Assembly: GCA_965240325.2 (NCBI GenBank)
Contig: OZ251233.1
Location: 496,001-560,000 of the forward strand
DNA from: Rebecca billardiae RCC1528
Taxonomy: Eukaryota > Protista > Haptophyta
DNA length: 64,000 bases
Direction of reading: 5' to 3'
Shown: positions 5,094-54,262 of the stretch, one piece after another
Numbering within the stretch: position 1 is the stretch's first letter
Layout of the letters: every line of letters begins with the position of its first letter
Notes under the pieces: generated by a model
Seen by the model: only the letters and a program-made list of their open reading frames with translations
What the model was told of the DNA's origin: nothing
Databases searched by the model: none
Translations under genes and position numbers: made by a program

Positions 5094-5230
5094 GGGTGAG
5101 GGATCGCACGACGGCCATGGCCGATAGGACGTGCACCACACCAAATAAAGGAATGGCGGTTTGTCCCTTGGTCGCACCTTGATTCGATTGGTCGCACAAC
5201 GGGTCGACCCCGGCCGGCCGGTCAATAATA

Positions 5231-14472: not shown

Positions 14473-15231
14473 TCTCGTGACGAACGTCCACGGACGGCCA
14501 ACAAATGGTTTCATGACGAATGAATAATTAAAACGGCCCGCCATTTATTAATTATTACCCAGAATATGATGATGATATGAAGTTTCCCACTTCGGAAAGG
14601 AAGCCATGGCGGGCGTGAATGCCCGTCCGACGGCGATCCAAGGCCCCAGCGCCACGGCCGGGTCACCGGGGCGTGGCGTAGGCAGGTTGGTGCGGTCGTA
14701 CGAGCGCATGGGCATGAGTGACAGCCTCCTTTCCGACTTTTCGACCACTCTCACGTCCACGTCCACGTCCTCGTGCGACCGGCGCGCGCGTGAGGCTGCG
14801 CATGGGAAGAATGAGCAAGTAGGGACCAGGATCACTGTTCCGACGGCCATGCCGACCTCTTTGGTATGCCTTGCGACGGTGCAGACCAGTCAATGTTCCG
14901 TCTGACCCAACACACTGCGAGTCTGACGATCAATGTTGACTGCGCGGTAGTCGTGCGACCGCCGTCCGACACGCGGGCACACGGCTGCCGTACGCCGTGA
15001 ATACGTGTGTCACAGCGTGTGCGCGCCTGTCAACGGCGAGGCGATCATCGACCGACATGGCTAGCGAGCTGATCAGGACTAGTAATAACCTTGTCTGATG
15101 GGACCACGCCACGCCATTTGGCGACCTCGCCACCGCTCAATGCCCGTCCAGAGGCACTGCCCGTGCCGAGTGCCGCACTATACCAGCAGTACCTGGCCAG
15201 CCACCGCCATTGCCAAACTCAAACTCAAAGT

Positions 15232-18200: not shown

Positions 18201-18294
18201 CGCGCCAGAAATTGCCGCGCACTGTGAAAAATCGGCGGTGCGGACTTTTGCGCGAACGCGCGCTTGAGGTGCCCGGGGCACCTCACTCGCCTGA
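15232..18294. mobile_element. Foldback element with about 0.9-kb inverted arms (15232-16144 / 17404-18294) and a 1.26-kb spacer
   Basis: The arms are near-identical reverse complements (mirror ORFs 15264-16070 and 17461-18267). Termini TCAGGCGAGTGAGG. 4-bp TSD AAGT at 15228-31 and 18295-98, or alternatively an imperfect 6-bp AAAGTT/AAAGTG with CAGG termini. Confidence 0.9.
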
Positions 18295-18494
18295 AAGTGG
18301 GGCCCACCATCTGCCATCTGGATTTATTCTGGACCCCGCCCCCTGTAGCAGCAGCAGATACACGTGCGATATACGTCCGATATGCATGGTAGTACGCCAC
18401 CACATCAGCGTGCATCTCGTCGGCAGAGGCGGCGCTGCACCGTACACCGGCCGTCGCGGCTGGCTCCCCAGCTAGAATATGTAGCGCCTGCTGA

Positions 18495-19513: not shown

Positions 19514-19642
19514 GGCGCGCGGCGACGACGGAGAGGAGCAGCAGCCTGATGCACGCGATCCGGGCGTGGCGTCCACGCCCGGCAGGCGCGCGCCCGGACT
19601 CCTGGGCCCAACCGGCGCAAAAGGGTTTGAACTTTGACCGCC
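19514..19642. promoter_or_regulatory. Putative compact bidirectional promoter
   Basis: Only 129 bp separate two divergent ATGs (19513 on minus, 19643 on plus). The interval contains an AT-rich patch, caaaagggtttgaactttga. Confidence 0.5.
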
Positions 19643-29124
<9,482 letters not shown>

Positions 29125-31388: not shown

Positions 31389-32517
31389 CAAGGGCGGTAA
31401 GGGCTGTCAACTCCCAGTGGCGGCGGTGGCAGAGGTTGGTCGCCGCTTCGTCGCTGCGCGGCCTCGCTCCAGCGACTAACTCTCGTGGGCGCCCGCCCTG
31501 GGGGGCGAGTGGGGCGCGCACGGCGCGAGCTCCTGTGGCCGTGTACGCGCGCGCGGAGGCGGCGCGCGTGGCTGGGCAGGTGCTAAGGAGTGTATGTCGC
31601 CCTCCCACGCCGCGCGCCTTGCTCGCCGCCGCTTTCGCCGCGCCTCAGGCCAGCGCGCACGCGTGCGCCGCCTCCAGAGCCAGCCTCGGGCAATCGGCAG
31701 CCGCCCGCGCATGTGTGGTGCGCGGTCTGGTCGGCGCGAGTCGGTCGGGGCCATCGGGCGAGGCTCGCATACTATAGACGCGCGCCATGCTGCCTCGCGC
31801 CGCCGCGCATGGGCCCGGTCCCATCCCGTGAAGCTGTTGAAGGAAGCTGATCGATGAATGCACGACAAGCAGAAATGAGCTCGAATACGTGACAGTGAGC
31901 GCACATGCGCGTGATAGGCGGCCGCATTGGGCGCGTGTACGGCGTCCTATGAGTGCATTGCCCCGCTCTTCATCGCCTGCGCGCGTCTATTGTGCTCTCC
32001 AGCGTCTCCATGAGCGTCCAAACATGAGCATTTTCGCATTCGTGCTGCAGTTCGTGTCAGACCTAAGATGCTTGCGTGTCGACCCATGACAACCCACGCG
32101 CGGCGGCGCGAGGCAGCATGGCGCGCGTCTATAGTATGCGAGCCTCGCCCGATGGCCCCGACCGACTCGCGCCGACCAGACCGCGCACCACACATGCGCG
32201 GGCGGCTGCCGATTGCCCGAGGCTGGCTCTGGAGGCGGCGCACGCGTGCGCGCTGGCCTGAGGCGCGGCGAAAGCGGCGGCGAGCAAGGCGCGCGGCGTG
32301 GGAGGGCGACATACACTCCTTAGCACCTGCCCAGCCACGCGCGCCGCCTCCGCGCGCGCGTACACGGCCACAGGAGCTCGCGCCGTGCGCGCCCCACTCG
32401 CCCCCCAGGGCGGGCGCCCACGAGAGTTAGTCGCTGGAGCGAGGCCGCGCAGCGACGAAGCGGCGACCAACCTCTGCCACCGCCGCCACTGGGAGTTGAC
32501 AGCCCTTACCGCCCTTG
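31389..32517. mobile_element. Foldback TIR element with 425-bp arms and a 7-bp TSD; P-superfamily-like termini
   Basis: Arms 31389-31813 and 32093-32517 are reverse complements around a 279-bp spacer. Termini CAAGG...CCTTG. TSD CCTCAGC at 31382-88 and 32518-24. Confidence 0.9.
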
Positions 32518-33055
32518 CCTCAGCTCCAGACGGGTGGTGAGCTGGGAAGCGAGTCCGGCCGGGGCCAGGCGAGCTCTTGATTTTCTCGTCAGTCTCGCGG
32601 CGTCTTTCTCACACTAATCAGGCATCTGGGTCAACCAGGTCCCCTGACTGAGTCAGCTGCGCTGCCCATCTCAAATGGGCCTCAACGGCGCCGCTGACGT
32701 GGCTGTCAGCCAATCAACCATATCACTTATCCAGCTGCTGATGATCAGCATATATGGAATAGAGATGAGCAGACCCTATGCCTTGCCTGCCGCCTTAAGC
32801 GGAGGCTTGCATGGGATTAGAGGGATGAGGCATTGCCAGGAACGGACGGCCCCTCCGCCCGCATTCATCCTGCCGACCGGCACTGCGCTGTCGGCAGCAG
32901 CCGCGTCGGCTGGGTGTGAGTGCGGGCGTGTGGCCGCCCTAGCCCCTCCCCTGTCGCCCGCCCTCGGGCGGGCGACCTCGGTGCCGCAGCCCTCAACAGG
33001 CCCAGCACCGCTGCCAGCAGCCCTGCGGACGGCCGCCGACAGGAGGGAGCTGAGC

Positions 33056-34900
33056 TCACGTCCTGCCGGATCCTATCCGCTGACGGCGTGCCCGGCCAGG
33101 CCGGGCACGCCGCGGGCCGCCAGCCCTGCCCTGCCCTGACACCTGCCCACCTGGCGTTGATGCCGGCTGCCAGGTGACAGGGCGAGGGCCTGCAGCACGC
33201 TGCAGCGTCCCCGACACCAGCGTGGCCGCGACCATGTACTTGCCCATAGTCAACCAGACCTCACAGCGCAAAGCAGCTGCCAAGGCCCAGAACGAGTGCA
33301 CGATGTGGGCCAAGTCGCGCACACCAGAGTAGCCAGTGAGCAGACCTGCCAAGGCACTCGTGTTGACGAGCCTGTGCTTTCGGAAGCGGAAGACCCGGGG
33401 GCGCAGGGCCCCCAGCATGACGGCCATGAATAGGAGAGAGGCCATAGATAGGCCAGAGTCCATCACTGCCCCCAACTAGTGCTGGAAGTGATCCTTCCCA
33501 GAGAGAGCCCTGCTGAACAGAGGCTGCAGGGCGGCCCTGCCGAAGCGGTAAGAAGCCCACTGCAGCTTGCCCAGAAGGCTGCCCATGTCCGACTGTTTGG
33601 CAATGCAACCTGCCGCAAGGATGGCTTCGATGGTATCCACCAGCAAAGAGATCCTGTCAGCATGCACGCTGCACCTGAGCTCGCTGCTGCGAGCAAAAGC
33701 AGAGAAGTCGTGTATGACCCTTAGGAAGGTTTTCACCAGACTTGGCCTGGTTGAACTGGAAGCCCATAAGGAGGCCCAGGTCCACCAGCAGCCCCTGCCC
33801 TCCTTTCGCAAAAGTGGGCTCACACACAGCAAAGCCCTACTCAAAGTAGTGCCCCACACAGATGGGAAGCGCCAGCACTGCGACCCTGGTGACGAACTCA
33901 GCCAGGCGATTGAATTGGATGACCGCGCTCTTCAGGCCAGAGTTGACCCCTGGAGACGAAAGAACACCACACGTCAGCGGAATGGGTCCCAGTGCGCGAG
34001 CAACGTGAATCGTGGCTGAGAGCACTGGATCCGGCGACACCCTGCTTCCATGTCCTCGATGCCCAGCATCATAGACCATCCAGAGTGGCCCAGCTGTCCC
34101 AGCACGTCGCTGACCAGGGCAGCCGCCCCTGCCGGGAAATCGCCCAAGGTGCACCGAAGCCGTTCGTGCAACGTTGTACACGAGTTGTGCAAGGAGGCCT
34201 TGGCGTTGTCGCACAGGCTGACCCTGCCGCCTTGTGGCACCCCGAGGCGGATCATGGGCACGCCACTTGTGCCTGCCGAAGAGGCGATCGACGTCTGGCG
34301 ACGAGCCGATCTCCGCCGGCCATCAGTCCTGCACCTCCTGCTGGGTGCGGGCCCACAGTGCTTCAAGGACGTCTGGGTGAGCGGCGCCGGCAGCCTGGGA
34401 TTGGAGTTGCTCCTCCACCGCTGCATCTTACCCGGCGTGATCCAGGTCCGCCACGCGGAGGCAGGCGTGCCGCGCATCTGCTCGGAAGACTCCGCTGTCC
34501 GCGCAATTGCCCACGCACTGGACACCGCAGACCAAATGAAAGCCACATGGGGCTTGCCGACGGTCTTACCATTCCGCGCTCCGAAGACCCACTCGGGTCG
34601 GCGGATGGAACCCGGTCCGAGCTGACGCAGTTCAGCCGACCAGCCAGACAGGCTGTCCGCCACCTCTCACGGTGTGGAACCAAGCCAGTCGGGCGTCGTG
34701 GACCGAGGTGCCTCTTGGTGCACAGATCCACGAGGCCGCCGCGCGCATGTCGAGTGCCAGGCCGAGCACAGGCGAGTTGAAGGGATGCTCCATCTGGCAC
34801 GCGGCCTCGATCCTGGGAGTGCCACTGCTGCTGCTTGAGCGTCGGCCGCTGGTATGCGGTGGCCACCACCAGGCCTGGGATGACCGACGTCGCCGCCTGG
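33056..34900 (-). pseudogene. Frameshifted and stop-interrupted pol: reverse transcriptase plus RNase H
   Basis: Fragments GFHLV..DSGVFR, LWARTQQEV, IRLGVPQGGRVSLCDNAKASLHN, EDMEAGCRRI, GLKSAVIQFNR, and CVGHYFE* (decayed YxDD). Downstream RNase H-like LVNTSALAGLLTGYSGVRDLAHIVHSFWALAAALRCEVW. Confidence 0.8.
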
Positions 34901-35163
34901 TGGACGGGCGGCCGGCGCATAACGTCGCGTTGCGCGCGCACCGCCTCCCGGCGCTGTGCGTCCGCTGCGACGCCGAACTCACCGGCCGCCATGCCGCATG
35001 TGCGACGGCCGTCCGGGACCGAAAGACCCCGGGTGTCCGGGGTGCGCAGGGTCACCGTGCGGCCGGGGCCGCGGCCCGCGGGCGGGAAATCAGCCGCCGC
35101 GCAGCGAGCGCCCCGATGGCAGCCGTCCCCAACCCCGCCGACGCGCCGCTGGCGCCCGACGAA

Positions 35164-35740
35164 TCCATCGAGCCACGAGGGCTGGACCCTGTCTCCATGA
35201 GACGACGGCGGCGGCCACAAGGGCGCACACGCCCAGACCGTCCGCTGCAGCACCGCGATATGCGGCGTGAGCTTCCCGGTTGCAGGTTGCAGGCAACCCT
35301 CACCGACTCACGAAGAGCCGACTGAGGCAGGCCAGAGCACCAGCGGGCCATCGAGCCACAAGGGCTGGACCCTGTCTCCATGAGACAACGGCGGCGGCCA
35401 CAAGGGCGCACACGCCCAGACCGTCCGCTGCAGCACCGCGATATGCGGCGTGAGCTTCCCGGTTGCAGGTTGCAGGCAACCCTCACAGACTCCCGAAGGG
35501 CCGACTGAGGTAGGCCAGAGCGCCAGCGGGCCATCGAGCCACGAGGGCTGGACCCTGTCTCCATGAGACACCGACGGTGGCCCCGAGGGCACGTACGCCC
35601 CGACCGTCTGCGGCAGCGCCGCGGAATGCAACGAGCGCTTCTCGGTTGCAGGTTGTTGGCAACCCTCGCCGACCCGCGAAGAGCCGGCGGTCGGGGGAGG
35701 CCCGATCCCCGCGGGCCATCGCGCCACGAGGACTGGGCCA
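35164..35740. repeat. About 183-bp tandem repeat, roughly 3 copies (same family as 37240-40450)
   Basis: Anchor ccatcgagccac at about 35164, 35348 and 35531. Confidence 0.9.
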
Positions 35741-37239
35741 TGTCGCTGTGCGAGCCCAGCTGCGGCCCCAAGGGCACGCTCGCCGAGGCCGTCGCCGCGC
35801 CCCCGGGGGGCAACGCAACGCGATGCAGCTGCGACTCGGAGCCGCCTGCTGATGCGCTGCTGATGCGCTGCCCGGGCCGCTCAACGCCTCGAAGAAGCTC
35901 CCCGGGCACTCGGAGAGATCTCCGGCGGCCAAGTGCCGCCGTTCCCGCAGTTCTCGGACGCCCTCGCCGCCGGGGCATCCGTGCCATCGCCGGAGGGGCG
36001 TGAGCAGTGCGCGTGCCCTGCTCCCTGAGCACATGGTGCTGGACGAGGTGAACGACACGGCCCTTGTGCCAGCGCTCCGAGACGACCAGTCACGGGCGTG
36101 TGCCACTCGTTCCAGCGGAGCGGCAGCTGCCCCAAGGTGAGGTGCCGCTTCCTCCATGTGCAGCAGAAGCAAAGCCGAAGGCTGGCGACGGCCGCGGGAA
36201 GCGCAAGGCAGGGTCAGACTCAGGTGGGGATCACACGTCCAATGATGAGTAGACGATATGACTGCACTGCAGCTTCCTTGTGTAGGGTGGGTTGGGTGGG
36301 ACGCGATGCAGCTGCGACTCGGAGCCGCCTGCTGATGCGCTTTTCCTTGCGGCGGCGAGTGCCGCCTCACCCGGAAGAACATCCGGTCCACTGTGAGTCT
36401 GCGCACTGCCGGACCGCGCACGGTCCGGGCACGATGCATGGTGTGTGTGACCTCTGGTTGTTTGAGCCATCTTCTGATTAGTAAGCTGCCACCAGCCTTC
36501 GGTGTTTATCGCACCACTAATCAGGCATCTGGGTCAACCAGGTCCCCTGACTGAGTCAGCTGCGCTGCCCATCTCAAATGGGCCTCAACGGCGCCGCTGA
36601 CGTGGCTGTCAGCCAATCAACCATATCACTTATCCAGCTGCTGATGATCAGCATATATGGAATAGAGATGAGCAGACCCTATGCCTTGCCTGCCGCCTTA
36701 AGCGGAGGCTTGCATGGGATTAGAGGGATGAGGCATTGCCAGGAACGGACGGCCCCTCCGCCCGCATTCATCCTGCCGACCGGCACTGCGCTGTCGGCAG
36801 CAGCCGCGTCGGCTGGGTGTGAGTGCGGGCGTGTGGCCGCCCTAGCCCCATTGATTGCCCTCCTGGCCACTGCGGTTGCCCGCACCCGGCGTCATCCCTT
36901 CCCATCGCTGCCTCAGATGGCGCACAGGGAGACTGCAGAGGTCTGCTCGGCCACTTCTGGCCTGCTCGCTGCATAGTATGTATGATGCAGCACAGTGCCG
37001 CATGCATCAGTGGAGCACGCGCGCCTGATGGCCATCACCGGCCAGATAGCACCATCAGGTGCTATCTGCGCTGCCAGTGCCACTGCTGGCACTGGCTGCG
37101 GCAGCGGGGGCAGTCCCTCGTTCGAGTAGTCCTGCCTCCCTGCTGGCGAGTCGGTCCATTGACCGCCGGTGTGCGCAATGGCATGCCCCACAGCTAGTGC
37201 GCACGAGTCAGTCCAGCGCACGCGAACTGCTCGCGCCTT

Positions 37240-40200
37240 GATGCAGGCACCCCTCACCGACTCACGAAGAGCCGAGTGAGGTAGGCCCGAGCACCAGCTG
37301 GCCATCGAGCCACGAGGGCTGAAACCTATCTCCATGAGGAGATAACTGCCCAGAGGGCGCACGCCCACTGACCGGACCCGCGCCCGCTGCAGCCCAGCTT
37401 CAGTATGCAGCATGAGCCAGTCCTGGTTGCAGGCTGCACTCGGCCAGCCTCACCGACTCCCGGAGGGCCGACTGAGGGAGGCCCGAGCACCAGCTGGCCA
37501 TCGAGCCACAAGGGCTGGGCCCTGTCTCCATGAGACAACGCAGCTGCCAAGAGGGCACACTCATGCCCAGACCGTAAGCTGCAGCCACCGCTGCATGCTG
37601 CAGTGATGCTGCGCGAGCTTTTCAGCTGCAAGTCGCAGGCATGCAACCCTCACAGACGCACGAAGGGTCGAATATGAGGTAATAAAGGTTGCGCAGGCTA
37701 TAACCCTCACCGACGACTCACGAAGAGCTGACTGAGGGAGGCCCGAGCACCAGCGGGCCATCAAGCCAAGATGACTGGGGCCCTGTCTCCATGAGACATG
37801 ACGGCGGTGGCCACCAGGGCGCACACGCCCAGACCGTCCGCGCAACAGCAATGCAATGTGCTGCGTGTCAGCGTGAGCTTCCAGGAGTTGTGACAGGCGG
37901 TTGCAGGCAACGCCCTCACCGACTCACGTGAGAGCCCTGGACTGAGGTAGGCCCAAGCATCTGCGGGCCATCGAGCCACGCGGGCTGGACCCTGTCCGTT
38001 CGCATAGCAGTTACTTGTCATAATCAGAGACAACCGTGTGGCGGCCACGAGGGCACACACACACAGTAACCGGTCTGCGCCTCAGCACCGCCTTGCGCAT
38101 TGTGCTGCGTGAGCTTCCAGGTTGCAGGCGGTTGCAGGCAACCCTCACCGACTTACGAAGAGCCCGGGACTGAGGTAGGCCCGAGCATCAGCGGGCCATC
38201 GAGCAACACGGGCCTGCTGACGGACCCTGTCTCAGCATGTGAGACAACTGCGCCGGCCGGGCCACCAGGGCACACACGCCCAGACCGTCCGCCGCGCCTC
38301 AGCACCGCAATGTAATGCTGCGTGAGCTTCCAGGTTGCAGGCGGTTGCGGGCAACCCTCACCGACTCACGAAGAGCCCGGGACTGAGGTAGGCCAGAGCA
38401 TCAGCGGGCCATCGAGCCACGCTGGCTGGACCCTGTCTGTCTTCATGAGACCGAACGGCGGCGGCCAAGAGGGCACACACGCCCAGACAGTCAGCTACAG
38501 CGCAGCAGTATGCTGCGCGTGACGAGCTTCCTGGTTGCAGGTTGCAGGCAACCCTCACCGACTGCCGAAGGGCCGACTGAGGTAGGCCAGCGCACCAGCC
38601 GGCCATCGAGCCACGAGGGCTGGACCCTGTCTCCGCGAGACAACGGCGGCGGCCACGAGGGCGCACATGCCCAGACCGCCCGCTGCAGCACCGCGACATG
38701 CGGCGTGAGCTTCCCGGTTGCAGGTTGGGGGCAACCCTCACCGACTCCCGAAGGGTCGACTGAGGTAGGCCAGAGCACCAGCGAGCCATCGAGCCACAAG
38801 GGCTGGACCCTGTCTTCATGAGACAAAGGCGGCGGCCACGAGAGCACACACGCCCAGACCGTCCACTGCAGCACAGCGACATGCGGCGTGAGCTTCCCGG
38901 TTGCAGGTTGCAGGCAACCCTCACCGACTCCCGAAGGGCCGACCGAGGTAGGCCAGAGCACCAGCGAGCCATCGAGCCACGAGGGCTGGGCCCTGTCTCC
39001 ATGAGACAACGGCGGCGGCCACAAGGGCACACACACCCAAACCGGCCGCTGCAGCACAGCTGTATGCGGCGTGAGCTTCCCGGTTGCAGGTGCAGGCGAC
39101 CCTCACCGACTCCCGAAGGGCCGACTGAGGTAGGCCAGAGCACCAGCGGGCCATCGAGCCACGAGGGCTGGACCCTGTCTCCATGAGACAAAGGCGGCGG
39201 CCACGAGAGCACACACGCCCAGACCGTCCGCTGCAGCACAGCAACATGCGGCGTGAGCTTCCCGGTTGCAGGTTGCAGGCAACCCTCACCGACTCCCGAA
39301 GGGCCGACCGAGGTAGGCCAGAGCACCAGCGAGCCATCGAGCCACGAGGGCTGGGCCCTGTCCCCATGAGACAACGGCAGCGGCCACAAGGGCACACACA
39401 CCCAAACCGGCCGCTGCAGCACCGCTGTATGCGGCGTGAGCTTCCCGGTTGCAGGTGCAGGCGACCCTCACCGACTCCCGAAGGGCCGACTGAGGTAGGC
39501 CAGAGCACCAGCGGGCCATCGAGCCACGAGGGCTGGACCCTGTCTCCATGAGACAACGGCGGCGGCCACAAGGGCACACACGCCCAGACCGTCCGCTGCA
39601 GCACAGCGACATGCTGCGCACGCTTCCCGGTTGCAGGTTGCTGGCAACCCCCACCGACTCCAGAAGGGCCGACTGAGGCAGGCCAGAGCACCAGCGAGCC
39701 ATCGAGCCACGAGGGCTGGACCCTGTCTCCATGAGACAACGGCGGCGGCCACAAGGGCACACACACCCAAACCGGCCGCTGCAGCACAGCTGTATGCTGC
39801 GTGAGCTTCCCGGTTGCAGGTGCAGGCGACCCTCACCGACTCCCGAAGGACCGACTGAGGTAGGCCAGAGCACCAGCGGGCCATCGAGCCACGAGGGCTG
39901 GACCCTGTCTCCATGAGACAACGGCGGCGGCCACGAGGGCGCACACGCCCAGACCGTCCACTGCAGCACCGCGATATGCAGCGTGAGCTTCCCGGTTGCA
40001 GGTTGCAGGCAACCCTCACCGACTCACGAAGAGCCGACTGAGGCAGGCCAGAGCACCAGCGGGCCATCGAGCCACAAGGGCTGGACCCTGTCTCCATGAG
40101 ACAACGGCGGCGGCCACAAGGGCGCACACGCCCAGACCGTCCGCTGCAGCACCGCGATATGCGGCGTGAGCTTCCCGGTTGCAGGTTGCAGGCAACCCTC

Positions 40201-40450
40201 ACAGACTCCCGAAGGGCCGACTGAGGTAGGCCAGAGCGCCAGCGGGCCATCGAGCCACGAGGGCTGGACCCTGTCTCCATGAGACACCGACGGTGGCCCC
40301 GAGGGCACGCTCGCCCCGACCGTCTGCGGCAGCGCCGCGGAATGCAACGAGCGCTTCTCGGTTGCAGGTTGTTGGCAACCCTCGCCGACCCGCGAAGAGC
40401 CGGCGGTCGGGGGAGGCCCGATCCCCGCGGGCCATCGCGCCACGAGGGCT
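37240..40450. repeat. Tandem array of about 17 units of 182-183 bp, with a 365-bp higher-order dimer and a degeneration gradient
   Basis: Anchor ccatcgagccac recurs at about 38603, 38786, 38969, 39151, 39334, 39516, 39699, 39881, 40064 and 40247. Copies at 37240-38520 are longer and carry many indels. ORFs at 38818 and 39183 repeat at 365 bp. Confidence 0.95.
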
Positions 40451-40856
40451 GGGCCATGTCGCTGTGCGAGCCCAGCTGCGGCCCCAAGGGCACGCTCGCC
40501 GAGGCCGTCGCCGCGCCCCCGGGGGGGAACGCAACGCGATGCAGCTGCGACTCGGAGCCGCCTGCTGATGCGCTTTTCCTTGCGGCGGCGAGTGCCGCCT
40601 CACCCGGAAGAACATCCGGTCCACTGTGAGTCTGCGCACTGCCGGACCGCGCACGGTCCGGGCACGATGCATGGTGTGTGTGACCTCTGGTTGTTTGAGC
40701 CATCTTCTGATTAGTAAGCTGCCACCAGCCTTCGGTGTTTATCGCACCAGAATTGAGCGCGCGGGTGGCGCTTCGCAACTCACGCCGGAGAGGGCTGCTC
40801 GCGCGACCCAGGCGCGCGCGGCGTTGTGCCCCTCGCCCGCGGCGGGCTCGCTGGCC

Positions 40857-42615
40857 ATGCGGACCGCCGGGGGCGCGGTCCGCGACGGGTGGGCGGCGCT
40901 CCGGCGCGGCGCGCAGGCGCTGGTCGAGTGGCCCTGGTTCGACCGCGCCATCCTGCTCATCATCCTCACCAACTGCGCGATGCTCGCGTGGGAGGGGCCG
41001 AGCGCGCGCGGCGTGGTCGTCGAGACGCCCGTCACGCACGTGCTGCACCGGCTCTCGTTCGCGTTCCAGATCGTGTTCACGGTGGAGGCGTCGCTCAAGG
41101 TCCTCGCGTACGGCCTGCTCGCGCCCTCGCGCGGCTACCTGCGCGACGCGTGGAACCTTCTCGACCTTCTGATCGTCGTGGTCGGCTGGCTGCAGTACAT
41201 CGTGCCCGGCGCGCACAACCTCTCGGCGGTGCGCTGCGTGCGCGCGCTGCGCCCGCTGCGCACGATCAAGCGGATGCCCGGCGTGCGCTCGCTCGTGGAC
41301 ACCATGGTCGCCTCCGCGCCCGGCATCGCCGACGTCGCCAAGCTGTGCGGCTTCTTCTTTGCGATCGCGGCGCTGTTTGGCATGCAGCTGTTCGGCGGCA
41401 CGCTGCGGTACCACTGCGTGCCGCCGGGGTGGGACGCGCCGGGCTCGGGGTTCGAGGTCGACGACGCGCGCGTGTGCCGCCAGCACGGCACGCGCTCGAG
41501 CGCGTCCGCCGGCTGCCCCGCCGGCCTCTCCTGCGCCGACGTCTCCGCCCCGGACACGGAGGCGCTCGGGTTTGACACGTTCGGCAAGGCGACGATGACG
41601 ATCTTCGTGCTGGTGACGCTCGAGGGGTGGGCGGCGCTGATGTACGACGAGGTGGACGCGATCGGCTGGCCCGCGGTGGTCTACTTCCTCCTCGTCGTGC
41701 TCTGCGGCGCGCTCCTCGTCTTCAACCTCGTGTGCGCGGTCATCATCGACCGGTTCGTGCCGCCCGAGCGCGACACCGCGCCGCCGCTCGCCGAGAGCGC
41801 CATGGTGGAGCGGCTGCTCTCGGTGTTCCGCGAGCCGCCGAGCGCGTGGCGGCTGCGCGTGCTCGCGCTCGTCGAGAGCCGCGCCTTCCGCGCCGTCATC
41901 CTCGGCGCCACCGCGCTGAACACGCTCGTGCTCGCGCTGTACCACCACGGGATGGAGCCGGCCTTTGAGAACATTCTCGAGGGCCTCAACAACGGCCTCG
42001 CGCTCGTCTTCCTGGGGGAGATGGGGCTCAAGCTGTTCGCGCTGGGGCTGCGCGCGTACATGGCGGACAGCTTCAACGTCTTCGACGGGCTCGTCGTCCT
42101 CTCCTCCCTGCTCGAGATGGCGCTCTCCCTCTCGGGCGTGGACGCGCTCAACGTGTCGCAGCTGCGCGCCTTCCGCCTCTTCCGCGTGCTCAAGCTCGCG
42201 CGCTCGTCCGCCGGGATGCGCCGCGTGCTCTCGATGATGATGAGCTCGCTGTTCCAGCTGAACTCGCTGCTCGTGCTGATGGCGCTCGTGCTCTTCGTCT
42301 TCGCCGCGCTCGGCATGCAGCTCTTCGGCCTGCGCTTCACGCCGGCCGCCGGTTTTGACGAGGTGCCGCGCGCAAACTTTGACGACATCCGCCACTCACT
42401 CATCACCTCCTTCATCGCGCTGTCCGGGGAGGACTGGCCGGACATCTACTCGACGTGCTTCCAGATCTCGCAGCCGGCGGCGACGCTCTTCTTCATCGCG
42501 CTGCACGTCGTGGGCAACTACGTGCTGCTCAACCTGATCATCGCCATCCTGCTCTCCAACATCGAGCTGGACGACGACGACGAGGACGACGACGAGGACG
42601 ACGACGAGGACGGCA

Positions 42616-42646
<31 letters not shown>

Positions 42647-45600
42647 CGGGGCCAAAGGGGGCGAAGGGGGCGCAGGCGGCGCGGGCGGAGGCGGAGGCGG
42701 CGGCGGCGACAGGGAAGGCGCCAAGGGCGCGGCCGGCGGGGGCACAGGCGGCGGCGGGGCCGCCGAGCGGGCGGGTGGGGACGCGGCGGCGGCGTGTGCG
42801 GCCGGCGGCGAGCGTGAGGGACCGGCGGCCGCGCGGGCCGGGGGCGCGCCGCCGCGGCCCGCGATGGCGGCGGCGGCGCTGGGCGCGGTAGGCGCCGCGG
42901 GGCGCGCCGCCCTGCGCGGGGCGCAGGGCGCGGCGGGGGCCGCGCGGCCGGCGCGCAGCAGAGGCGCGCAGGGCGCGCAGGGCGAGGCGGGGGCGGAGCG
43001 CGGCAGCGGCGCACGCGCGGAGGCTGCGCCGCAGCTCGCCCAGCAGGGCTCGGCCTCGGGCGGCGGCGCGTCGGCCGCCCCGAGGCGTGCCTTGCGCGCG
43101 GCGGCCAAGCTGCAGCGCGCGCGCTCGGCCGAGCAGCTGGAGTCGCAGCGAGGAGCGGCGGCGGAGGGGCCGCCGGCAGACGACGCGCGCGGCTGCATCG
43201 TGCGCGAGCGAGATCGCGCGTGCGGCTGCGTGCGCGCGGACAACCGCGCGCGCGCGGCCGCGCGCGCGGTGGTCGCGTCGCGCGCGTTCCGCTGGCTGGT
43301 CGTTTTCATGATCGGCGTGGGCTCGGTCGCGATGGCGATCGAGCCGCTCACGCCCGCGCAGGTGGCCGCGCGCCCGTGGCTCGCCGAGAGCACCGAGTGG
43401 GTCGACCGCGTGGTCACGGCCTTCTTTGTGGCCGAGCTCGGGCTCAAGCTGCTCGCTCTCGGGGTGCTCTGGCCCGCGCCGAGCGCGTACCTGCGCGACG
43501 CGTGGAACCGGCTCGACCTGGTGATCGTGCTCGCGTCCGTCGTCTCGCTGTGGAACGTGCCCGGCCTCGAGTGGCTCGCCGGCGCCATGTGCCTGCGCGC
43601 GCTCCGCCCGCTGCGTCTCGTCTCGCAGCACGGCGGCATGCGCGTGGTGGTGAACGCGCTGCTGCTCACGCTGCCCTCCGTGTGGAGCGTCGTCGTGATC
43701 TTCGCGCTGTTCATCCTCGTGTTCGCCATCCTGGGCGTGCAGCTCTTCGGCGGCGCGTTCGGCGCGTGCAACGACGAGACCATCCCCACCGCCGCGCAGT
43801 GCGTCGGCACGTTCGTGCCGCCGGGCGGCGGCGCGCCCGCAGCGCGCGAGTGGGCCAACCCGACGTACGGCCACTTCGACTCGGTCCCCTCGGCCTCGCT
43901 GCTCCTCTTTGAGCTCACGGGGCTCGAGGGCTGGCCGACGGTGATGTTCCGCGCGGTGGACGCCGTCGGCCCGGGCCTCGCGCCGTCGCGCGACCACAAC
44001 CCGTACGCCGCGCTCTTCTTCGTGCTGTGGGTCCTTCTGGGCGGCTTCTTCCTGGCGAACCTCTTTGTGGGCGTGATCGTCGACACCTTCTCCGAGCTCA
44101 AGCGCGCCGAGGAGGGGCTGCTCTTCATGACGGCGGAGCAGCGGCAGTGGGTGCGCATGCAGGAGGTGATGCTCCAGTCGGCGGCGCGGCAGAAGCCCGA
44201 GCGCCCGCGCTCCACGTGGCGCGGCGCGCTGTACGACGCCGTCGAGTCGAAGCACTTTGAGACCGTGGTGATGTGCGCGATCGGCCTGGGCGCGCTCGTG
44301 ACCGCGCTCAACGGGTACGACCGGCCGCGCTGGCTCGGCTCGGCGCCCGAGGTGGTGAGCATCGCGACGGGCGCGCTGTTCGCGCTGGAGGCGTCGCTCA
44401 AGATCGGCGCGTACGGCTGGGCCAAGTACATCGCGCAGGGCTGGAACCGCTTCGACTTCGTGATCGTGCTCGCCTCGGCCGCCGACTGGGTGATGCTGGC
44501 GATCCGCGTGAGCCTGCCCGTCTCCGGCGGCCTCGTGCGCGCGCTGCGGCTGCTGCGGCTCGTGCGCATCGTGCGCGCGGCGCGCTGGGCGCGCGGCGTG
44601 CTCGTGCTCGTGCGCGCTCTGCTGCTCACGCTGCCCTCGCTCGGCAACGTCGTCGTCCTCGTGATCGTCATCCTCTTCATGTTCGCCGTGCTCGGCACGC
44701 ACCTGTTCGTGCGCGTCACGGAGGGCGCGGTCGTCAGCGAGCACGTCAACTTTGGCTCGCTCGGCTCGGCGATGCTCACGCTCTTCCAGTGCGCGACGGG
44801 CGACGAGTGGAACGCGATCATGCACGACCTGATGCTCGGCGGCGGCTGCGACGCCGCGGCCCAAGTGCCCGCGTCCGCCGAGCACCACGGCGGGAGCGGC
44901 GGCGTCGACGGCGGCGTCGACGGCGGCGTCGACGGCGGCGGCGGCGTCGAGGGCGGTCCGTTTGCGCTCGGCTGCGCGACCGGCCTGGCCGTGCCCTACT
45001 TTGTGGCCTTCACGCTCACCTCGACGTTCATCGCGATGAACATCATCATCGCGATCGTGATCGACAACTTCTCGGACGCGGAGAACGAGCAGCAGCGGCG
45101 CGACGAGATGGTCACCACCGAGCACATCGACGCGTTCAGAGAGGCGTGGGCGCAGCTCGACCCGCAGGCGCTGCAGAGGCTGCACGTGCGCTGGCTCGAC
45201 GAGCTCGTGCGCATGACGCCGCAGCCGCTCGGGCTGAGCGGCGCGCTCGGCGCGGGGCGGCACTCGGCCTTCTTCGACTTCCTGCGCGAGGTGCGCACGC
45301 TGCGCGCGTACGCCGCGCACGCCGGCCCGGTCGTCACGTTCCACGACACGCTCGACGCGCTCATCGACCGCGCCTTCCCCGGCGCCAAGGCGGCGGCGAC
45401 CGAGCTGGGCAGCGGCGCGATGATTGCCGAGATGGAGCAGCGCAAGACGCAGCGGCAGCAGCAGCAGCTCTCGCGCACGCTGAGCGAGCGCAGGGCGTCG
45501 CCGCTCCCGGGCCGCATCGTCGCGACCATCGTGCCGGACACGATCGACGCGCCGATCGTCGAGGTGTACGCGGCGCTCCGGCTGCAGCGGCAGTGGCGCG

Positions 45601-45941
45601 AGCGAACGCAGCGCAGGAAGGGCGAGGGGCGGCGCTTCACCAGCCCGGTGCAGCTCAAGCGCATGCAGTCCGCGATGCGCAAGGCCAGGCTCTCGCGGCT
45701 CTCGATCACAGGGATCACAGGGGTGCGGCCGAGCAAGCGGCGCCTCTTCGACCTCGTCGACGGCGATGCCAAGTCGGGCGGCGGCCTGCGCAAGCCGCTG
45801 CGGCTCAAGTGGCGGCGCCCCGCCGCGCTCGCGGCGTGCGGCTGGCCGCGCCCGCCGCGCAGCGCCGACGCGCGCGAGGCGCGAGCAGCCGCGAGCGGGA
45901 AGAAGGCGGGAGGTAAGCCATCCATCACCGACCTGCTGTAA
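40857..45941 (+). CDS. Four-domain voltage-gated Ca2+/Na+ channel alpha subunit (intronless)
   Basis: Four 6-TM repeats with S4 sensors (RCVRALRPLRTIKR, RAFRLFRVLKLAR, LRALRPLRLV, RALRLLRLVRIVRAAR). Pore loops TLEGW, SGEDW, GLEGW and TGDEW. III-IV linker LFMTAEQ, EF-hand-like FREAWAQLDP, IQ-like AALRLQRQWR. Confidence 0.97.
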
Positions 45942-46995
45942 GAGGCCACTCGAGCGACTTCGTGTCAGGCGAGGCAGATCGCGCCAGTGCGAGGCGAGGC
46001 AGACGCTCGCCTGCCTCGCCCAGCAGGCGAGGCAGCTAAGCTAGTAAAGCCGCGGCCGAACTTTACGAAAGCCAAATGTCTGCCGGTGCGCCGCCCGTCT
46101 TTGCGCACGGTGACAAGGGCGCGCGAGGGCGCTTCCTCACGATCCCGAAGAGCGCTGCGCGCGGCGTCGCGTTGGCGGCGGCAGCGGCGCTGGGGTGTAT
46201 CTTGCCCATTCTGCTTGGCGGTGCGCGCTCATGACGCCTCGGCCGCCGCCACGCCATGCGCGACCGGGCGTGTCGCCTTCTTGACGGGCAGTGCACACGC
46301 CCTTGCAAGCGCACAGCCGTGAAGAGCCGAGAGCGTCCGTCGCGCGCACGCCGCCCACGCGGGATGAGGTTTCAGGACTATTCGTATGACACTGAGCGAT
46401 CGCGCTCTGGCATGTGCGAGCCATGATGACCATGGGTAGCAACTACGATGACCACTGCTCACCTGCATTTCAGCCGATGACATCCTCTCGTTCAGCGATC
46501 TTGACTGCTCTGAACGCATGGCGAACTCGGCGGAGCGCATGGGCAAGGTGGCTTCGTTGATAACACAAAGCATCCCGCGTGGGCGGCGTGCGCGCGACGG
46601 ACGCTCTCGGCTCTTCACGGCTGTGCGCTTGCAAGGGCGTGTGCACTGCCCGTCAAGAAGGCGACACGCCCGGTCGCGCATGGCGTGGCGGCGGCCGAGG
46701 CGTCATGAGCGCGCACCGCCAAGCAGAATGGGCAAGATACACCCCAGCGCCGCTGCCGCCGCCAACGCGACGCCGCGCGCAGCGCTCTTCGGGATCGTGA
46801 GGAAGCGCCCTCGCGCGCCCTTGTCACCGTGCGCAAAGACGGGCGGCGCACCGGCAGACATTTGGCTTTCGTAAAGTTCGGCCGCGGCTTTACTAGCTTA
46901 GCTGCCTCGCCTGCTGGGCGAGGCAGGCGAGCGTCTGCCTCGCCTCGCACTGGCGCGATCTGCCTCGCCTGACACGAAGTCGCTCGAGCGGCCTC
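45942..46995. mobile_element. Foldback TIR element with 425-bp arms, GAGGCC termini and 5-bp TSD TGTAA
   Basis: Arms 45942-46366 and 46571-46995 are reverse complements around a 204-bp spacer. TGTAA lies at 45937-41 (including the channel stop codon) and at 46996-47000. Confidence 0.92.
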
Positions 46996-47350
46996 TGTAA
47001 GCCGCAACCTCCGGGCGTCCTCGATCACTCCTCGAGTCCATTATAATTGAGTCTCGAGTGAACTGAGTCACAAATGAGAAGACCGCGATCGACGAGTCCG
47101 CGGACGAGTGGGATCGAGGCTGCTCGTTGTATGAGAATTAGCAGATACAATGCTGGACAGCGCTGTATTGGCGAGATGAATATGGAATCCATCATGACGA
47201 CAACGAGTCGGCTCATCTGCTACGGAATGTGGAATATCATCAGACATTCAGACTGCGCCCTGAATATGATATGATTATAATAATGAGTCGGGCTGGTTTA
47301 AGCGATGAGCCGGGAGTTGGCGGCCTTGAGCGGGGCCCCCCTTCGACGAG

Positions 47351-50248
47351 ATGAGTTTGCCCTCTCCGCAGAGCGCGACGGCGCAGCGCGTGGAAAGCCA
47401 CATCGCCGATCTCAAGTCGTTTGCCCGCGCGATTGGCGACGAGCGCGCGCAGCTGCTGTCCGATTGCCCGCCGCAGCGGTCGTCTGAGTGCGCCTCGTCC
47501 GACTCGGGCGAATCGGCGCACATGGTGTGGTCGCGGCAGGAGATTCTGCGCGTGACGACGCCGCCTCCGCTGCAGCTCTCCTGGCGCTACACGTACGCCG
47601 ATCCGTGCGAGGAGGCTGAGCAGGTGGCCGAGGAGCTGCGCCCGATGATGGGCCGCCGCCTGTTCCTCGTCGGCCGCTTCTTTGCGGGCATGAGCGCGTG
47701 GGTCGTCGTGCGCGAGGCGTGGGCGACGCGCGCCGAGCCGTCGGCCTTCCTCGCGCTCGCCCTGGCGGCGCTGTGCGCGCACCTCGCGATGATGACGGTC
47801 GGCCTGCGCTCCGAGCGCTGGGGTCTGCGCTACCGCACGCTCGAGGCCGTCGCGGTCGCGATCGGCATGGTGCACACGCTCGTCCAAGGCCTCGCGTTTG
47901 TGCCGTACCGGCTGGACGCGCTCTTCGGCGCGGAGCCGCCCGCGACAGCGCAGTTCCGGATGTCGGTCGCGGACGCGCGGCTGCGCGTCGCGCTCATCCC
48001 GGTCGCCTACTCAGTGTTCCTGCCGATGCAGCCGCTCGGCTTTGGCGTCCTCGGCGGCTGGATCTTCACGCAGGCGATCAGCGTGTGGTGGCTGCTGCCG
48101 CCGCCGCCGTCGGACGGCAGCCAGGACCTCGGCTCTGTGATCACGCTGTGCACGATCGTCGTCATGGCCATGTTCAGCCGCGTGTACGTCGTCCTCTCGC
48201 GCCGCGGGCAGTGGCACTACAAGCGGACCGTGCGCCGCGCGCTCGTCGACCTGGTCGAGATCGAGCGCGCGCGCCGCCGGCTCGAGTCGGCCGAGGCGCT
48301 GCAGAAGACCGCGCTGCTCACCGCGCAGGTGGCGCAGGGCGCGCGCTCGCGCCTCATCCGGATGGTGATGCACGACCTGCGCTCGCCGCTCCTCTCCGTC
48401 GTCAACATCGCCGCCTCGGTCGACGCGATGCCCGCGGGCACGGTGCTCGGCGACGCGCGCATGCGCTCGGCCACCGAGGCGCTCAGCACGTGCGCCACGC
48501 TGATGGAGCAGATCGTGAGCGACATGCTCGACTTTGAGCGGATCGACTCGGGCCGGCTGGTGCTCGTGCCCGCGCCGTTCCACGTCTCGCAGCTGCTGCG
48601 CGACGCGCTCGCCACCTTCGCGGGCCTGGCGCACAAGAAGGGCGTCGAGATGAGCACCGAGGCTCTGCCGGACGAGCTCGCGAGCCGCTGGTTCGTGGGC
48701 GACAGCCGCCGGCTGCAGCAGTGCCTCAACAACGGCATCTCGAACGCGATCAAGTTCACCGAGCGCGGCGGGAGCGTGCGCGTGCGCGCGTACGCGGCGC
48801 AGGAGGCCGCGGCCGAGACGCCCTCGCAGGAAGCCAGCCCCGCTGCGTCCGACGCCGAGCCGGCCGAGGGCACGGAGAGGGCGGCCGACGGCGCGCGCGA
48901 CGACGACGGCGACGCCGCGCTGCTGCTCGGAGCAGACGATGCGTGCGCGGCCGACGCGCCGCTGTGGCGCGTGCACGTGTGCGTCACTGACACGGGCGTG
49001 GGGCTGGACGCGGACGAGCTGGCGGCGCTGCAGAGCGGCGACCTGTTCCAGCAGGTGGGCAAGGGGCAGCTGCAGGGCAACGGCGGGACTGGGCTGGGAC
49101 TGAGCATCACACGGCAGCTGCTCGCGCTGCACTCGCGGTCCACGCTCCACCTCAGCTCAGCGGGCGCGCGCCAGGGGACCAGCTTTGAGCTGCGGCTCCG
49201 GCTGCGCGAGGCGCACGGGCGGCCCGTCCGCCGCCACTCGTCGCTGCGGCGGTGCAGCCTCGCCTCGAGCGCGCCCGCCGAGACCGAGGAGCTCGAGCGC
49301 GCGGACGGTGCCGCGCACGCCCACTCGCTCGAGCCGTCCGCGCTGCAGCTGCGCCCGGCCTTCCGTGTGCTGTACGCAGAGGATGATGCCTTCCTGCAGG
49401 TGCGCAGCGGGCTGGCCGCGCGGGAGCGGCGCGCGCGCCGAATGCGCACCGAGTGCCGGCGCCGTGCCGCGCGCGCACCTGCCCCCGCGCCGGTGCCCGC
49501 GCGCGCCGCTCGGCTCGCGGCTGCCCCCTGAGCCCGGCGCCCCCGCGGGTCGCGCGCCGCGCAGATGTCTATGCAGGCGCGGCTCTTTGGGCCGTACGCC
49601 GTGGCGGTGGACATGGCGCACGATGGGCAGGAGGCGCTCGAGGCCGTCACGGCGGAGCTGGGGAGGTACGATCTCGTGCTGCTGGACAACCAGATGCCGC
49701 GGATGAACGGCACGACCGCGACGCGCAGGATGCGCGAGGCGGGGTATGCAGGCGTCATCATCGGCATGACCGGTGCGCGGCGGGCGCGGCGCGGCGCATC
49801 GTGCCGGCACCGCCCCGCGTGCGCGCGCGCGCCCGTCGCGTCGGCTGACCCCACGCGCGCGCTGGCACTTGCGCGGCCGCCGCGTGACGGCGCAGGCGAC
49901 CCGGCCGGCTGCCCGGAGCGTGCGGAGTTCGAGGCGAGCGGCCTCGACTCGTGCATCGACAAGGACAACAACGGCGTGCAGTCCATCATCGCGCTCCTCT
50001 TCGAGCTGAGCCAGCAGGCAGCAGCAGACGTGGACTCGCTCGAGTTGAGCTGCGCCGAGCATCCGGGCGCGCAGTCTGATGAGCAGCTGGGACCCGCCGC
50101 CGGGGCCGACGGAGCTGACGTCGTCATCGACTGTCATCACGCGGTGGCGGACGCAGCAGGCGTCGCCGGCGCAGGCGGGGCTAGCCCAGCAGACGCCACC
50201 GATGACGGCGACGAGCGCTGCGCCGCATCAATCTCAATCTGTTCGTAA
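47351..50248 (+). CDS. Membrane-bound hybrid sensor histidine kinase (TM - HisKA - HATPase - receiver); introns 49400-49564 and 49773-49895
   Basis: H-box MVMHDLRSPL, N-box LNNGISNAIKFT, G1 DTGVGL, G2 GTGLGLSI. The receiver (VLYAEDD...DLVLLDNQMP...IIGMTG|D...IDK) is assembled across two GT..AG introns. About 5-6 N-terminal hydrophobic helices. Confidence 0.93.
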
Positions 50249-52533: not shown

Positions 52534-54262
52534 ATGGCGGCTCCTCCCGCTCCGACCGCTGATGAAGCTCAGACTGCTGACGCTTCGGCCGTTGGCTCTG
52601 CTCTGCTTCTTGAAGGAACAATCGCCAAATTCAAGCGAAACACAACCATTCCCAAGCTGCACGCAGTTGCTCAGAGGAAGTACGACATCTTCTGCCGCAA
52701 CCGCACGGCCGAGCTCTACACCACGTGCTTCGGCTTGGTCGGCGATTCTCCTCCAGACTTTAGCGAGGCGGTATTTGTGAGGGAATTCGAGGCATGCGTG
52801 CCATTCCCGGGCAAAACGAACCAGCGCCCGGTCTGTGGCATGGCCAGAGGTGGGTCCACCCCGCACGGCCTCATTCGATACGAGTTCAAAGGCTGCAGTG
52901 TCGAGGAGTGCCGCGTCAATGGAAGGGAGCACGGTCTGCGCGTCGTCTGCACCCAGATGGGCGACTATTGGATCCGGCTCTATTCGAATGGCGTGCGTCT
53001 CGCCCAGATCGTGCTGACCGCGGACGGCACAGAGGGAGGTGGCCTCACAATCGACAATGGCGGGCTGGAGGCGCTCAAGGGCCACCTCCACTTGATACGC
53101 GGATGCATCACTTTGGCCCCGGGCAGTAAGAGGCCACTTCACCGAAATCCAGGTTGGGGAGGATCTCCGCTGCACTGGTGGGGAGGATGTCATCCTCCCC
53201 GCTCGCCACGGCTGGGGAGGATGTCCGCCGCGCTGTCCGGTCTTTCGCCGCTGACAAAACTTTCGAAAACGAAAGTCGCGCTATGGCGGACCCGGTGTTC
53301 CCGCCCGGCGGCGAAAGGGGCGCGGGGCCGGTGGCTCGCGATCCGAAGGGCAGTAGCTCGCGACCTCGCTTGGGCGGTGGCAGCGGCGCTGTGGCACGGC
53401 GTGTACCATCCGCGCGGCTGTGCGCGATCGCGCGGTCCCGTTCGTCGCCACGCCGCGCGCGACCGTTCACGCCACAGTCTTTCCGCACTGGCATGCACCC
53501 GTTGCAAGCGCATGACGGCGGAGAGCTCAGAGAGCCCGTCACGCGCGTGACGACCGTGTGGGATGGGTTGTGCCGATATGAAGGCTGCCCTTCGTAGGCT
53601 TTCTGATGAGCCCATCCAACGTTCAGACCATTCCTAACTGCTGAAAGATGAGTCATCGCCTGCCACACGGCCATGGAGTTGTGGACAGTACAGCAGCCGT
53701 CCATGATCCGCATGCCCGCCTCATGGGCCGGCGCGTGCCTCCCTGAACATGAAGACAAGCTGTACAACCCATCCCACACGGTCGTCACGCGCGTGACGGG
53801 CTCTCTGAGCTCTCCGCCGTCATGCGCTTGCAACGGGTGCATGCCAGTGCGGAAAGACTGTGGCGTGAACGGTCGCGCGCGGCGTGGCGACGAACGGGAC
53901 CGCGCGATCGCGCACAGCCGCGCGGATGGTACACGCTGTGCCACAGCGCCGCTGCCACCGCCCAAGCGAGGTCGCGTGCTACTGCCCTTCGGATCGCGAG
54001 CCACCGGCCCCGCGCCCCTTTCGCCGCCGGGCGGGAACACCGGGTCCGCCATAGCGCGACTTTCGTTTTCGAAAGTTTTGTCAGCGGCGAAAGACCGGAC
54101 AGCGCGGCGGACATCCTCCCCAGCCGTGGCGAGCGGGGAGGATGACATCCTCCCCACCAGTGCAGCGGAGATCCTCCCCAACCTGGATTTCGGTGAAGTG
54201 GCCTCAGTAACGCAGTTGAGTCTGGCTCGTCCGTCAGAACGCGGCGCCTAGCAGCGCCGTAG
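52534..54262 (+). pseudogene. Orphan ORF (about 215 aa when reconstructed) interrupted near its 3' end by a foldback element
   Basis: ATG at 52534 opens a non-low-complexity frame to 53129 (possible MORN-like NGREHGLRVV). Removing the element and one TSD copy gives ...APGSNAVESGSSVRTRRLAAP*, with TAG at 54260-62. GC is lower than in neighbouring genes. Confidence 0.55.
53130..54205. mobile_element. Foldback TIR element with 442-bp arms, GAGGCC termini and 5-bp TSD AGTAA
   Basis: Arms 53130-53571 and 53764-54205 are reverse complements with a few mismatches, around a 192-bp spacer. AGTAA lies at 53125-29 and 54206-10. Confidence 0.92.

Follow-up and report, generated by a model that had tools for sequence, protein, structure and literature searches.

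The stretch of DNA analyzed here, a 64,000-nucleotide window of contig OZ251233.1 of Rebecca billardiae RCC1528, harbors at positions 32612-40749 an 8.1-kb retroelement whose sense strand is the minus strand and whose ends and middle are built from two short sequences, repeat A (216 bp) and repeat B (335 bp). Repeat A1 (40534-40749, minus strand) forms the 5' terminus in the sense of the element and is 100% identical to an internal copy, A2 (36301-36516, minus strand); likewise, the 3'-terminal repeat B2 (32612-32946, minus strand) is 100% identical to the internal B1 (36515-36849, minus strand), and in both pairs identity ends sharply at the repeat edges. The two internal copies are joined as B1·A2, a circle-junction repeat that is referred to below as R. 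Read along the minus strand, the element consists of A1, a long tandem array, a unique segment of 392 bp, B1·A2, a second unique segment of 442 bp, an additional A tail with a short array, a pol pseudogene and B2. An earlier annotation made from the letters alone, hereafter the sequence-only reading, had described the two repeats, the order A1-array-B1A2-pol-B2 and the internal repeat array; the coordinates and identities confirm all of these, and add to the array, made of 183-bp units, a second, short one in the pol half.

The joints of the element share a single dinucleotide. A2 and B1 overlap by CA at 36515-36516, and on the plus strand the flank CTTTCTCA is followed by the CA that opens B2, while the CA that closes A1 is followed by the flank GAATTG. 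The empty site can thus be reconstructed as CTTTCTCA-CA-GAATTG, with no target-site duplication beyond the shared CA, exactly as the sequence-only reading had it. Taken alone, the coincidence of CA at the joints has a chance of about 1 in 16; the arrangement as a whole, A1...B1A2...B2 with CA at all three joints, combines the circle junction, the shared core and the lack of duplication that characterize tyrosine recombinase (YR) retrotransposons, and the split direct repeats A1-B1-A2-B2 are those of the PAT/TOC superfamily. The assignment to a tyrosine-recombinase type of retroelement, previously made on these same features, therefore holds, and the perfect identity of both repeat pairs suggests that this copy moved recently. 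No further copy of any part of the element lies within the window, exact-pattern scans of metagenome contigs with the array segment and the B/A junction returned 0 matches, and an exact-protein look-up of two open reading frames (ORFs) of the element found no record.

The coding remnant of the element is the pol pseudogene (33251-34941, minus strand), delineated by tblastn with two intact homologs, P0002 and P0027, and comprising an N-terminal helical domain, a reverse transcriptase (RT) and a truncated ribonuclease H (RNase H). It aligns to residues 5-701 of P0002 and, with 42% identity over 735 aligned residues, to P0027, along a path that switches frame at least 3 times and crosses at least 5 in-frame stops. 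The YFDD motif of the RT active site has become YFE followed by a stop codon, RNase H has lost about 86 amino acids from its N-terminal half, and HFVDN reads HRLVN. Pfam matches no minus-strand ORF of the element, pol included, and a HMMER search of 1.8 billion representatives with the best-preserved piece of pol retrieved 18 weak relatives; in these comparisons the pieces were searched singly, or intact relatives were aligned to the DNA, rather than a consensus or repaired pol being built.

The nature of this gene becomes apparent from its intact family (P0002, P0027 and others), whose members are about 770-820 amino acids long and are homologous to the window over about 700 residues, that is, nearly their full length. 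Although the family barely touches Pfam RVT_1, an AlphaFold model based on 36 members (predicted local distance difference test score, pLDDT, 88) matches the RTs of cauliflower mosaic virus (CaMV), Moloney murine leukemia virus, HIV-1, foamy virus and Ty3 with E-values of 1e-12 to 1e-10 over 450-610 columns, covering both RT and RNase H; among the columns that never vary is the DD of the RT active site. By sequence, the family profile finds in the PDB the CaMV RT alone (E 0.009). The family thus has an RT and RNase H of retroviral and long terminal repeat (LTR) type, of which the window copy has lost the catalytic residues, and the RT-RNase H of the sequence-only reading stands as regards homology and fold and falls as regards function: the window pol reads as an RT-RNase H by origin and, at present, as a dead pseudogene. 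In the family, RNase H extends to within about 30-60 residues of the C-terminus, and no match to the DIRS-type methyltransferase (MT) domain that follows RNase H in PAT elements was found; in the window, only about 300 bp separate the end of detectable pol homology at 33251 from B2.

All but one of the pol homologs come from metagenome or read-archive assemblies, several of them TARA marine datasets, and the family clusters, which include TARA contigs, hold up to 114 member sequences. The sole named source is a Prymnesium sp. metagenome-assembled genome (MAG), in which the gene model of the homolog (P0091, 841 amino acids) joins a retroelement pol to a bicarbonate-transporter domain (PF00955), a fusion that is probably an annotation chimera.

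Contigs of relatives that carry an intact pol share one set of four or five genes. On the pol strand lies a methylase-like protein of 470-560 amino acids, the C-terminal part of which matches C5 cytosine methylases: Pfam PF00145 is marginal, the profile finds M.HhaI and DNMT2 in the PDB at E 1e-6, and PPC, ENV and RxR motifs are present. In some lineages there is also DUF4326, either encoded on its own in antisense or as a fusion with pol. A gag-like protein of 450-630 amino acids, encoded antisense, ends in a C-terminal C-x8-9-C-x4-5-C-x3-H finger. The remaining protein (520-750 amino acids, pol strand) has no Pfam match, and its profile found nothing relevant in the PDB by sequence, for which reason its fold was compared instead. 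The best PDB counterparts of its model (pLDDT 83) are XerH, integron integrase, Cre/Tre, XerA and Flp, with Foldseek probabilities of up to 0.99 and TM-scores on the target of up to 0.57. Its invariant residues are R286, K314, H406, H409, W448 and Y495, with an H-x-x-H box that places a histidine where the second catalytic arginine is expected and an R-to-K spacing of 28, as in Cre. Consistent fold hits and this residue pattern lead us to regard it as the predicted tyrosine recombinase of the family.

The repeats of the relatives are arranged around this gene. A complete R (= B·A) of 352-428 bp lies, with 100% identity, on both sides of the recombinase gene in contigs L021, L023 and L024, and in L021 and L024 the contig start equals the contig end, giving a circular assembly path of R, cassette 1, R, cassette 2. 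In L020 (1-4926) the recombinase cassette is present twice in tandem, with a period of 2430 bp and an identity of 99.96%; this tandem and the identical ends of L021 and L024 could reflect circular or tandem molecules, or the presence of both permuted genomic forms. The order in L001 is A, recombinase, B, A, DUF4326 (antisense), gag (antisense), pol, B. As their gene content reads, the relatives therefore consist of two cassettes with R between them, one holding a methylase-like gene or DUF4326 together with the antisense gag-like gene and pol, the other the recombinase gene. Since several relatives with less than 50% mutual protein identity have this same R-cassette-R-cassette layout, it is taken to be ancestral. 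A more distant relative (24% identity), the 22.6-kb contig L025 with host flanks, has the canonical layout A1-ORFs-B1A2-17 bp-B2, an overlap of CAA between B1 and A2, CAA at both ends and no duplication; its other two proteins show no detectable relation to the recombinase profile, and no recombinase was recognized in it. Full-length YR relatives with an A-ORFs-B-A-B layout, the finding by which the sequence-only reading proposed to be judged, thus exist in part: the layout does, in L025, and so does the recombinase, in closer relatives, but L025 has no recognized recombinase and the closer relatives have two cassettes.

Against this background, the non-coding halves of the window element can be compared with the two cassettes. 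The 442-bp segment unique to the pol half (35859-36300) separates A2 from the block made of A tail and short array, and contains, antisense to the element (plus strand, 36101-36157), a relic of a CCCH zinc finger that matches Pfam zf-CCCH with 20.8 bits (cut-off 20.5; E 3.7e-4). This is the exception in a Pfam search of 18 element ORFs that otherwise gave no match. Patterns of the form C-x7-9-C-x4-5-C-x3-H occur only 2 times in the six-frame translation of the whole window; the other, also on the plus and hence antisense strand (36832-36885), straddles one edge of B1. The relic at 36101-36157 matches the antisense gag-like gene of the relatives by its strand as well as by its position.

On the other side of R, the 392-bp unique segment upstream of B1 (36850-37241, minus strand) includes a candidate relic of a recombinase C-terminus, running from 37248 down to 37087 and aligned by tblastn, at a weak score, to residues 628-686 of the L024 recombinase (37% identity, E 0.02). 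Its location immediately before B1 is the position where the recombinase gene ends in the relatives. This was the only match, and a weak one, when the methylase, DUF4326, gag and recombinase proteins of the relatives were compared with the window by tblastn; the window has neither a methylase-like gene nor DUF4326. Furthermore, the minus-strand translation of both copies of repeat A contains a motif that resembles box II of the relatives' recombinase, the conserved G-H-S-x-H-A-S-x-P-E-W-A-R with its H-x-x-H. The recombinase profile scores 9.8 bits against the translation from 36533 to 36234, a value reached by 1 of 300 dinucleotide shuffles of the region; a recombinase-like motif at this site is suggestive but unexpected, because R is intergenic in the relatives. 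No recombinase, integrase or endonuclease domain is otherwise detectable by Pfam in any ORF of the element, in agreement with the sequence-only reading. YR retrotransposons are defined by encoding a tyrosine recombinase in place of a DDE integrase, and the window element, which encodes neither in detectable form, is accordingly classed as a non-autonomous derivative rather than as an autonomous member.

Most of the A1-proximal half is taken up by the long array of 183-bp units (37242-40533, minus strand), of which 12.6 units are regular (38103-40460) and those at 37242-38102 are decayed. A higher-order period of 365 bp is superimposed on it, the periods of 182, 183 and 365 bp are no steady multiple of 3, and the array copies differ from one another by substitutions. 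Judging by position, the array stands in place of the recombinase cassette of the relatives. In the pol half, a short array of about 3.2-3.6 units (35165-35817, minus strand) is joined to an additional copy of the final 41 bp of repeat A (35818-35858, minus strand), and over 694 bp the resulting block agrees at 98.8% identity with the sequence in which A1 meets the long array (39881-40574). Presumably, one cassette later acquired the block from the other, through template switching or unequal recombination.

Together, these observations make it probable that the element derives from a two-cassette YR retrotransposon with split direct repeats, of which it is one decayed copy without autonomy. 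As indicated by the positions of pol, the CCCH finger and the recombinase C-terminus, its halves carry relics of different cassettes in the order of L001, and the two-cassette plan of the relatives accounts both for the missing integrase and for a pol that follows the junction. The latter had been considered anomalous by the sequence-only reading, according to which the coding region normally precedes the junction; this generalization is not supported, as the position of the internal B1A2 varies among PAT elements (PMC4157794) and pol follows the junction in L001 as well. Having no working RT and no recombinase, the window copy would have been moved by the proteins of an autonomous relative, and the contrast between 100% identical repeats and a heavily decayed pol argues for movement, or regeneration, of this copy at a time when pol was already defunct.

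A plausible course of events starts with an RNA extending from A to B, which an autonomous relative's RT would reverse-transcribe in trans. With the internal B1·A2 as template, a full B·A junction would then be rebuilt on circular complementary DNA, and the recombinase of the relative would cross this junction with a chromosomal CA, leaving A...B ends that share CA with the target and no duplication. Such a scheme follows the model proposed for elements of DIRS type, whose ends are regenerated from a copy of the termini located internally and which integrate at a short shared core without duplication (PMC7192593), the circle junction and the target sharing a species-specific trinucleotide (PMC7192593). 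The CA at three joints and the CAA of L025 fit this model. Mobilization in trans, the circular intermediate, the crossover at CA and a haptophyte host are all points that we infer.

Several considerations weigh against the two-cassette interpretation. The recombinase relics in the window are weak, consisting of the match at E 0.02 and the 9.8-bit motif, and the near-identical block of A tail and array in both halves requires an additional rearrangement. The closest intact pol is distant, being only about 42% identical to the window copy. Foldseek E-values for the recombinase fold are weak as well (0.06 and above), and the second catalytic arginine is replaced by histidine in the predicted enzyme. 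The metagenomic contigs of the relatives end at repeats, so which R is opened in the genome is not visible from them. Finally, as far as the host genome is concerned, the reading draws on this single copy, and not on further insertions, an empty site or an autonomous partner.

The repetition of the A tail and array in both halves, at 98.8% identity, could also mean that the element is a composite, formed when an A-array-B circle and an A-gag relic-array-pol-B circle integrated successively at the same CA or junction, with B1·A2 as a by-product. That R-flanked units do recombine is evident from the tandem recombinase cassette of L020, and YR elements have been reported to insert preferentially into their own copies (PMC7192593). 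Yet the R-cassette-R-cassette layout is shared by several relatives that are less than 50% identical, and is hence ancestral, and the halves of the window element hold relics of different cassettes in the order seen in L001; a composite origin is therefore considered unlikely. The related proposal of the sequence-only reading, a tandem of two differently deleted copies, is not the best fit either, because what lies next to A and B in one half bears no relation to its counterpart in the other. Perfectly identical repeat pairs and a 694-bp block at 98.8% identity also resemble the patterns left by collapsed or chimeric assembly, and mis-joined reads of a repetitive family could in principle have produced the locus. 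We regard such an artefact as very improbable, given that the layout agrees with that of independent relatives from other assemblies, that the repeats have sharp edges sharing a CA core and that the array copies differ by substitutions, as in real sequence.

The lack of an integrase had suggested yet another possibility to the sequence-only reading, namely an undescribed architecture in which the RT is coupled to non-coding RNA modules; in its fullest form, this would make the element an autonomous or semi-autonomous retroelement in which structured RNAs replace the integrase. The array is indeed large, and sense-strand RNA of repeat B folds better than its dinucleotide shuffles (z = -4.5, with 0 of 100 shuffles as good), so that the structured-RNA-like end noted earlier is real as far as B is concerned. 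It does not extend further: repeat A (z = -0.8) and the array unit (z = -0.2) show no folding excess over shuffles, and Rfam gives no match to the element at the gathering threshold or at E <= 0.1. Moreover, autonomy is impossible for a pol without the catalytic aspartates of RT and with half of its RNase H deleted, and the intact relatives encode a recombinase-fold protein within an R-flanked cassette, which leaves an undescribed architecture of this kind without support. Of the explanations weighed here, replacement of the integrase by RNA modules is the most improbable, whereas the degenerate two-cassette YR retrotransposon remains the preferred one.

Beyond the window, the relatives may tentatively be regarded as an undescribed clade of haptophytes or other marine protists, although we hold this with clearly less assurance than the interpretation of the window element itself. 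Its members would combine a cassette for an H-x-x-H recombinase, flanked by complete copies of R, with another cassette for an antisense CCCH gag-like protein, a truncated C5-methylase-like protein or DUF4326 and an RT-RNase H missed by Pfam, and either R could be opened. The hosts are probably haptophytes, as suggested by the marine-metagenomic homologs, the one Prymnesium protein and the GC-rich window. A survey of 2011 left one DIRS-like sequence of Emiliania huxleyi unresolved (PMC3266345), and no description of the clade was found in the literature on haptophyte YR retrotransposons or on DUF4326 in retrotransposons, a search with Repbase outside its scope. If the clade is real, the R-flanked recombinase cassette would be an exchangeable module that can be duplicated independently, as in L020, or replaced by an array, as in the window; and, since a circle would carry two identical R sites, integration could open either one and yield two permuted genomic forms. 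The clade would be a natural test of how split-repeat YR elements choose their junction, and would add a case of a retrotransposon with a cytosine-methylase-like gene.

The element lies in a window with a GC content of 63-85%, next to an intronless ORF for a four-domain cation channel of the voltage-gated type (40857-45941, plus strand; Pfam Ion_trans x4, E 1e-203). The A1 end is located 108 bp upstream of the likely ATG of the channel at 40857, in divergent orientation. Three foldback-like elements (31389-32517, 45941-46996 and 53130-54205) have inverted arms of 425-442 bp that are 99% or more complementary, loops of 200-280 bp and short direct duplications of the flanks (CCTCAGC, about TGTAA, and AGTAA, respectively). 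The first is 95 bp from the B2 end, the second begins at the stop codon of the channel ORF, and the terminus GAGGCCAC is common to the second and third, as is an internal stretch of about 86 bp with 76% identity. The regions 47351-49531 (plus strand; HisKA and HATPase_c histidine-kinase domains) and 54579-55865 (plus strand; RCC1 repeats) look like ordinary host genes. A stretch at about 19600-29000 has 84% GC, overlapping ORFs of great length (up to 2397 amino acids) on both strands, a codon-like periodicity and a marginal WD40 match, and is possibly one extremely GC-rich gene; the only tRNA called by ARAGORN, a doubtful 95-nt tRNA-Ala at 24060-24154, falls within it, far from the element, and is probably spurious. 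Two further repeat pairs, which are unrelated to the element and may belong to other transposable elements, are a direct one at 824-1977 and 3959-5106 (1.15 kb, 97.5% identity) and an inverted one at 15231-16144 and 17403-18295 (0.9 kb, 97.0% identity). At the end of the window, 57055-63998 is a tandem array of about 7 kb with periods of 12 and 48 bp, the unit CCGCCGAGCCCG, 82-85% GC and a strong negative GC skew.

For the window itself the outcome is modest, in that an 8-kb repeat puzzle resolves into what is most readily understood as a dead retrotransposon that relied on proteins supplied in trans and lies 108 bp upstream of an ion-channel gene. Its wider value lies in pointing to a family that is abundant in marine samples, whose RT and recombinase escape Pfam and of which the searches run here yielded one named homolog. 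Annotation of this clade would aid repeat masking and gene calling in GC-rich algal genomes, where fusions such as that of pol in the Prymnesium MAG can arise.

Comparison with characterized systems places the family near several of them, and in its proposed way of working it resembles split-repeat YR retrotransposons of the PAT/TOC or Ngaro type. Membership in PAT or DIRS proper fails on one defining feature, as no MT domain follows RNase H in pol. Nematode-form Pat1 and kangaroo are nevertheless close in layout, for their internal B1A2 lies between MT and YR (PMC4157794), so that their A1-B1A2-B2 order with an internal repeat between the pol genes and the recombinase parallels the two cassettes of the relatives. 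They differ in that the pol cassette comes first and the recombinase last, whereas the recombinase cassette is first in the window element and in L001, and in that their pol carries the DIRS-type MT that is lacking in the pol of the present clade. Kangaroo also has one inverted gene, like the relatives, although the gene in question is the recombinase rather than gag. Ngaro elements share the split direct repeats, an RT-RNase H without MT and a tyrosine recombinase (PMC4157794, PMC7192593), but have their internal repeats downstream of the recombinase and all genes on one strand; in the relatives, compared with Ngaro by layout, the internal repeat separates the recombinase from the gag/pol cassette and gag runs antisense, the layout of L025 being canonical.

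The C5 methylase has a counterpart in SymbioDIRS-Dnmt3 of Symbiodinium, which also has an RT too divergent for the Pfam models and an order of integrase and pol ORFs that is shuffled between subfamilies (PMC5890265). Its repeats follow an A-coding-B-A-B order (PMC5890265), and its DNMT is a domain of the Pol polyprotein, unlike the separate short methylase-like gene, or DUF4326, of the clade described here. DIRS-1 of Dictyostelium resembles the family in possessing an internal copy of the termini that restores the ends, and a short core common to junction and target, with no duplication (PMC7192593); it has inverted terminal repeats and an internal complementary region instead of split direct repeats.

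The nearest parallel to the window element as a non-autonomous copy is TOC1 of the green alga Chlamydomonas reinhardtii. Its repeats are 217 and 237 bp long. Placement of the window element among green-algal TOC1 relatives was considered and dropped, because the pol relatives are marine-metagenomic with one Prymnesium match and have no MT domain; compared with both TOC1 and TOC3, the window pol belongs to a family in which RNase H is not followed by MT, and whose known members suggest haptophytes rather than green algae. TOC1 represents a non-autonomous form of the YR-encoding TOC3 (PMC5613634, PMC9940879), and, to go by the title of the original report by Day & Rochaix in 1991 (cited in PMC3623635), it has within it a tandem array of 76-bp repeats, as opposed to the 183-bp units and the 216- and 335-bp repeats of the window element. 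By description, the only basis on which the two were compared, the unusual LTR arrangement and array of TOC1 correspond to the split repeats and internal array found here in an element without a recombinase. While dependence on an autonomous partner is presumed for the window element, it displays three other TOC1-like features, namely the lack of a recombinase, a non-functional coding capacity and an internal tandem array.

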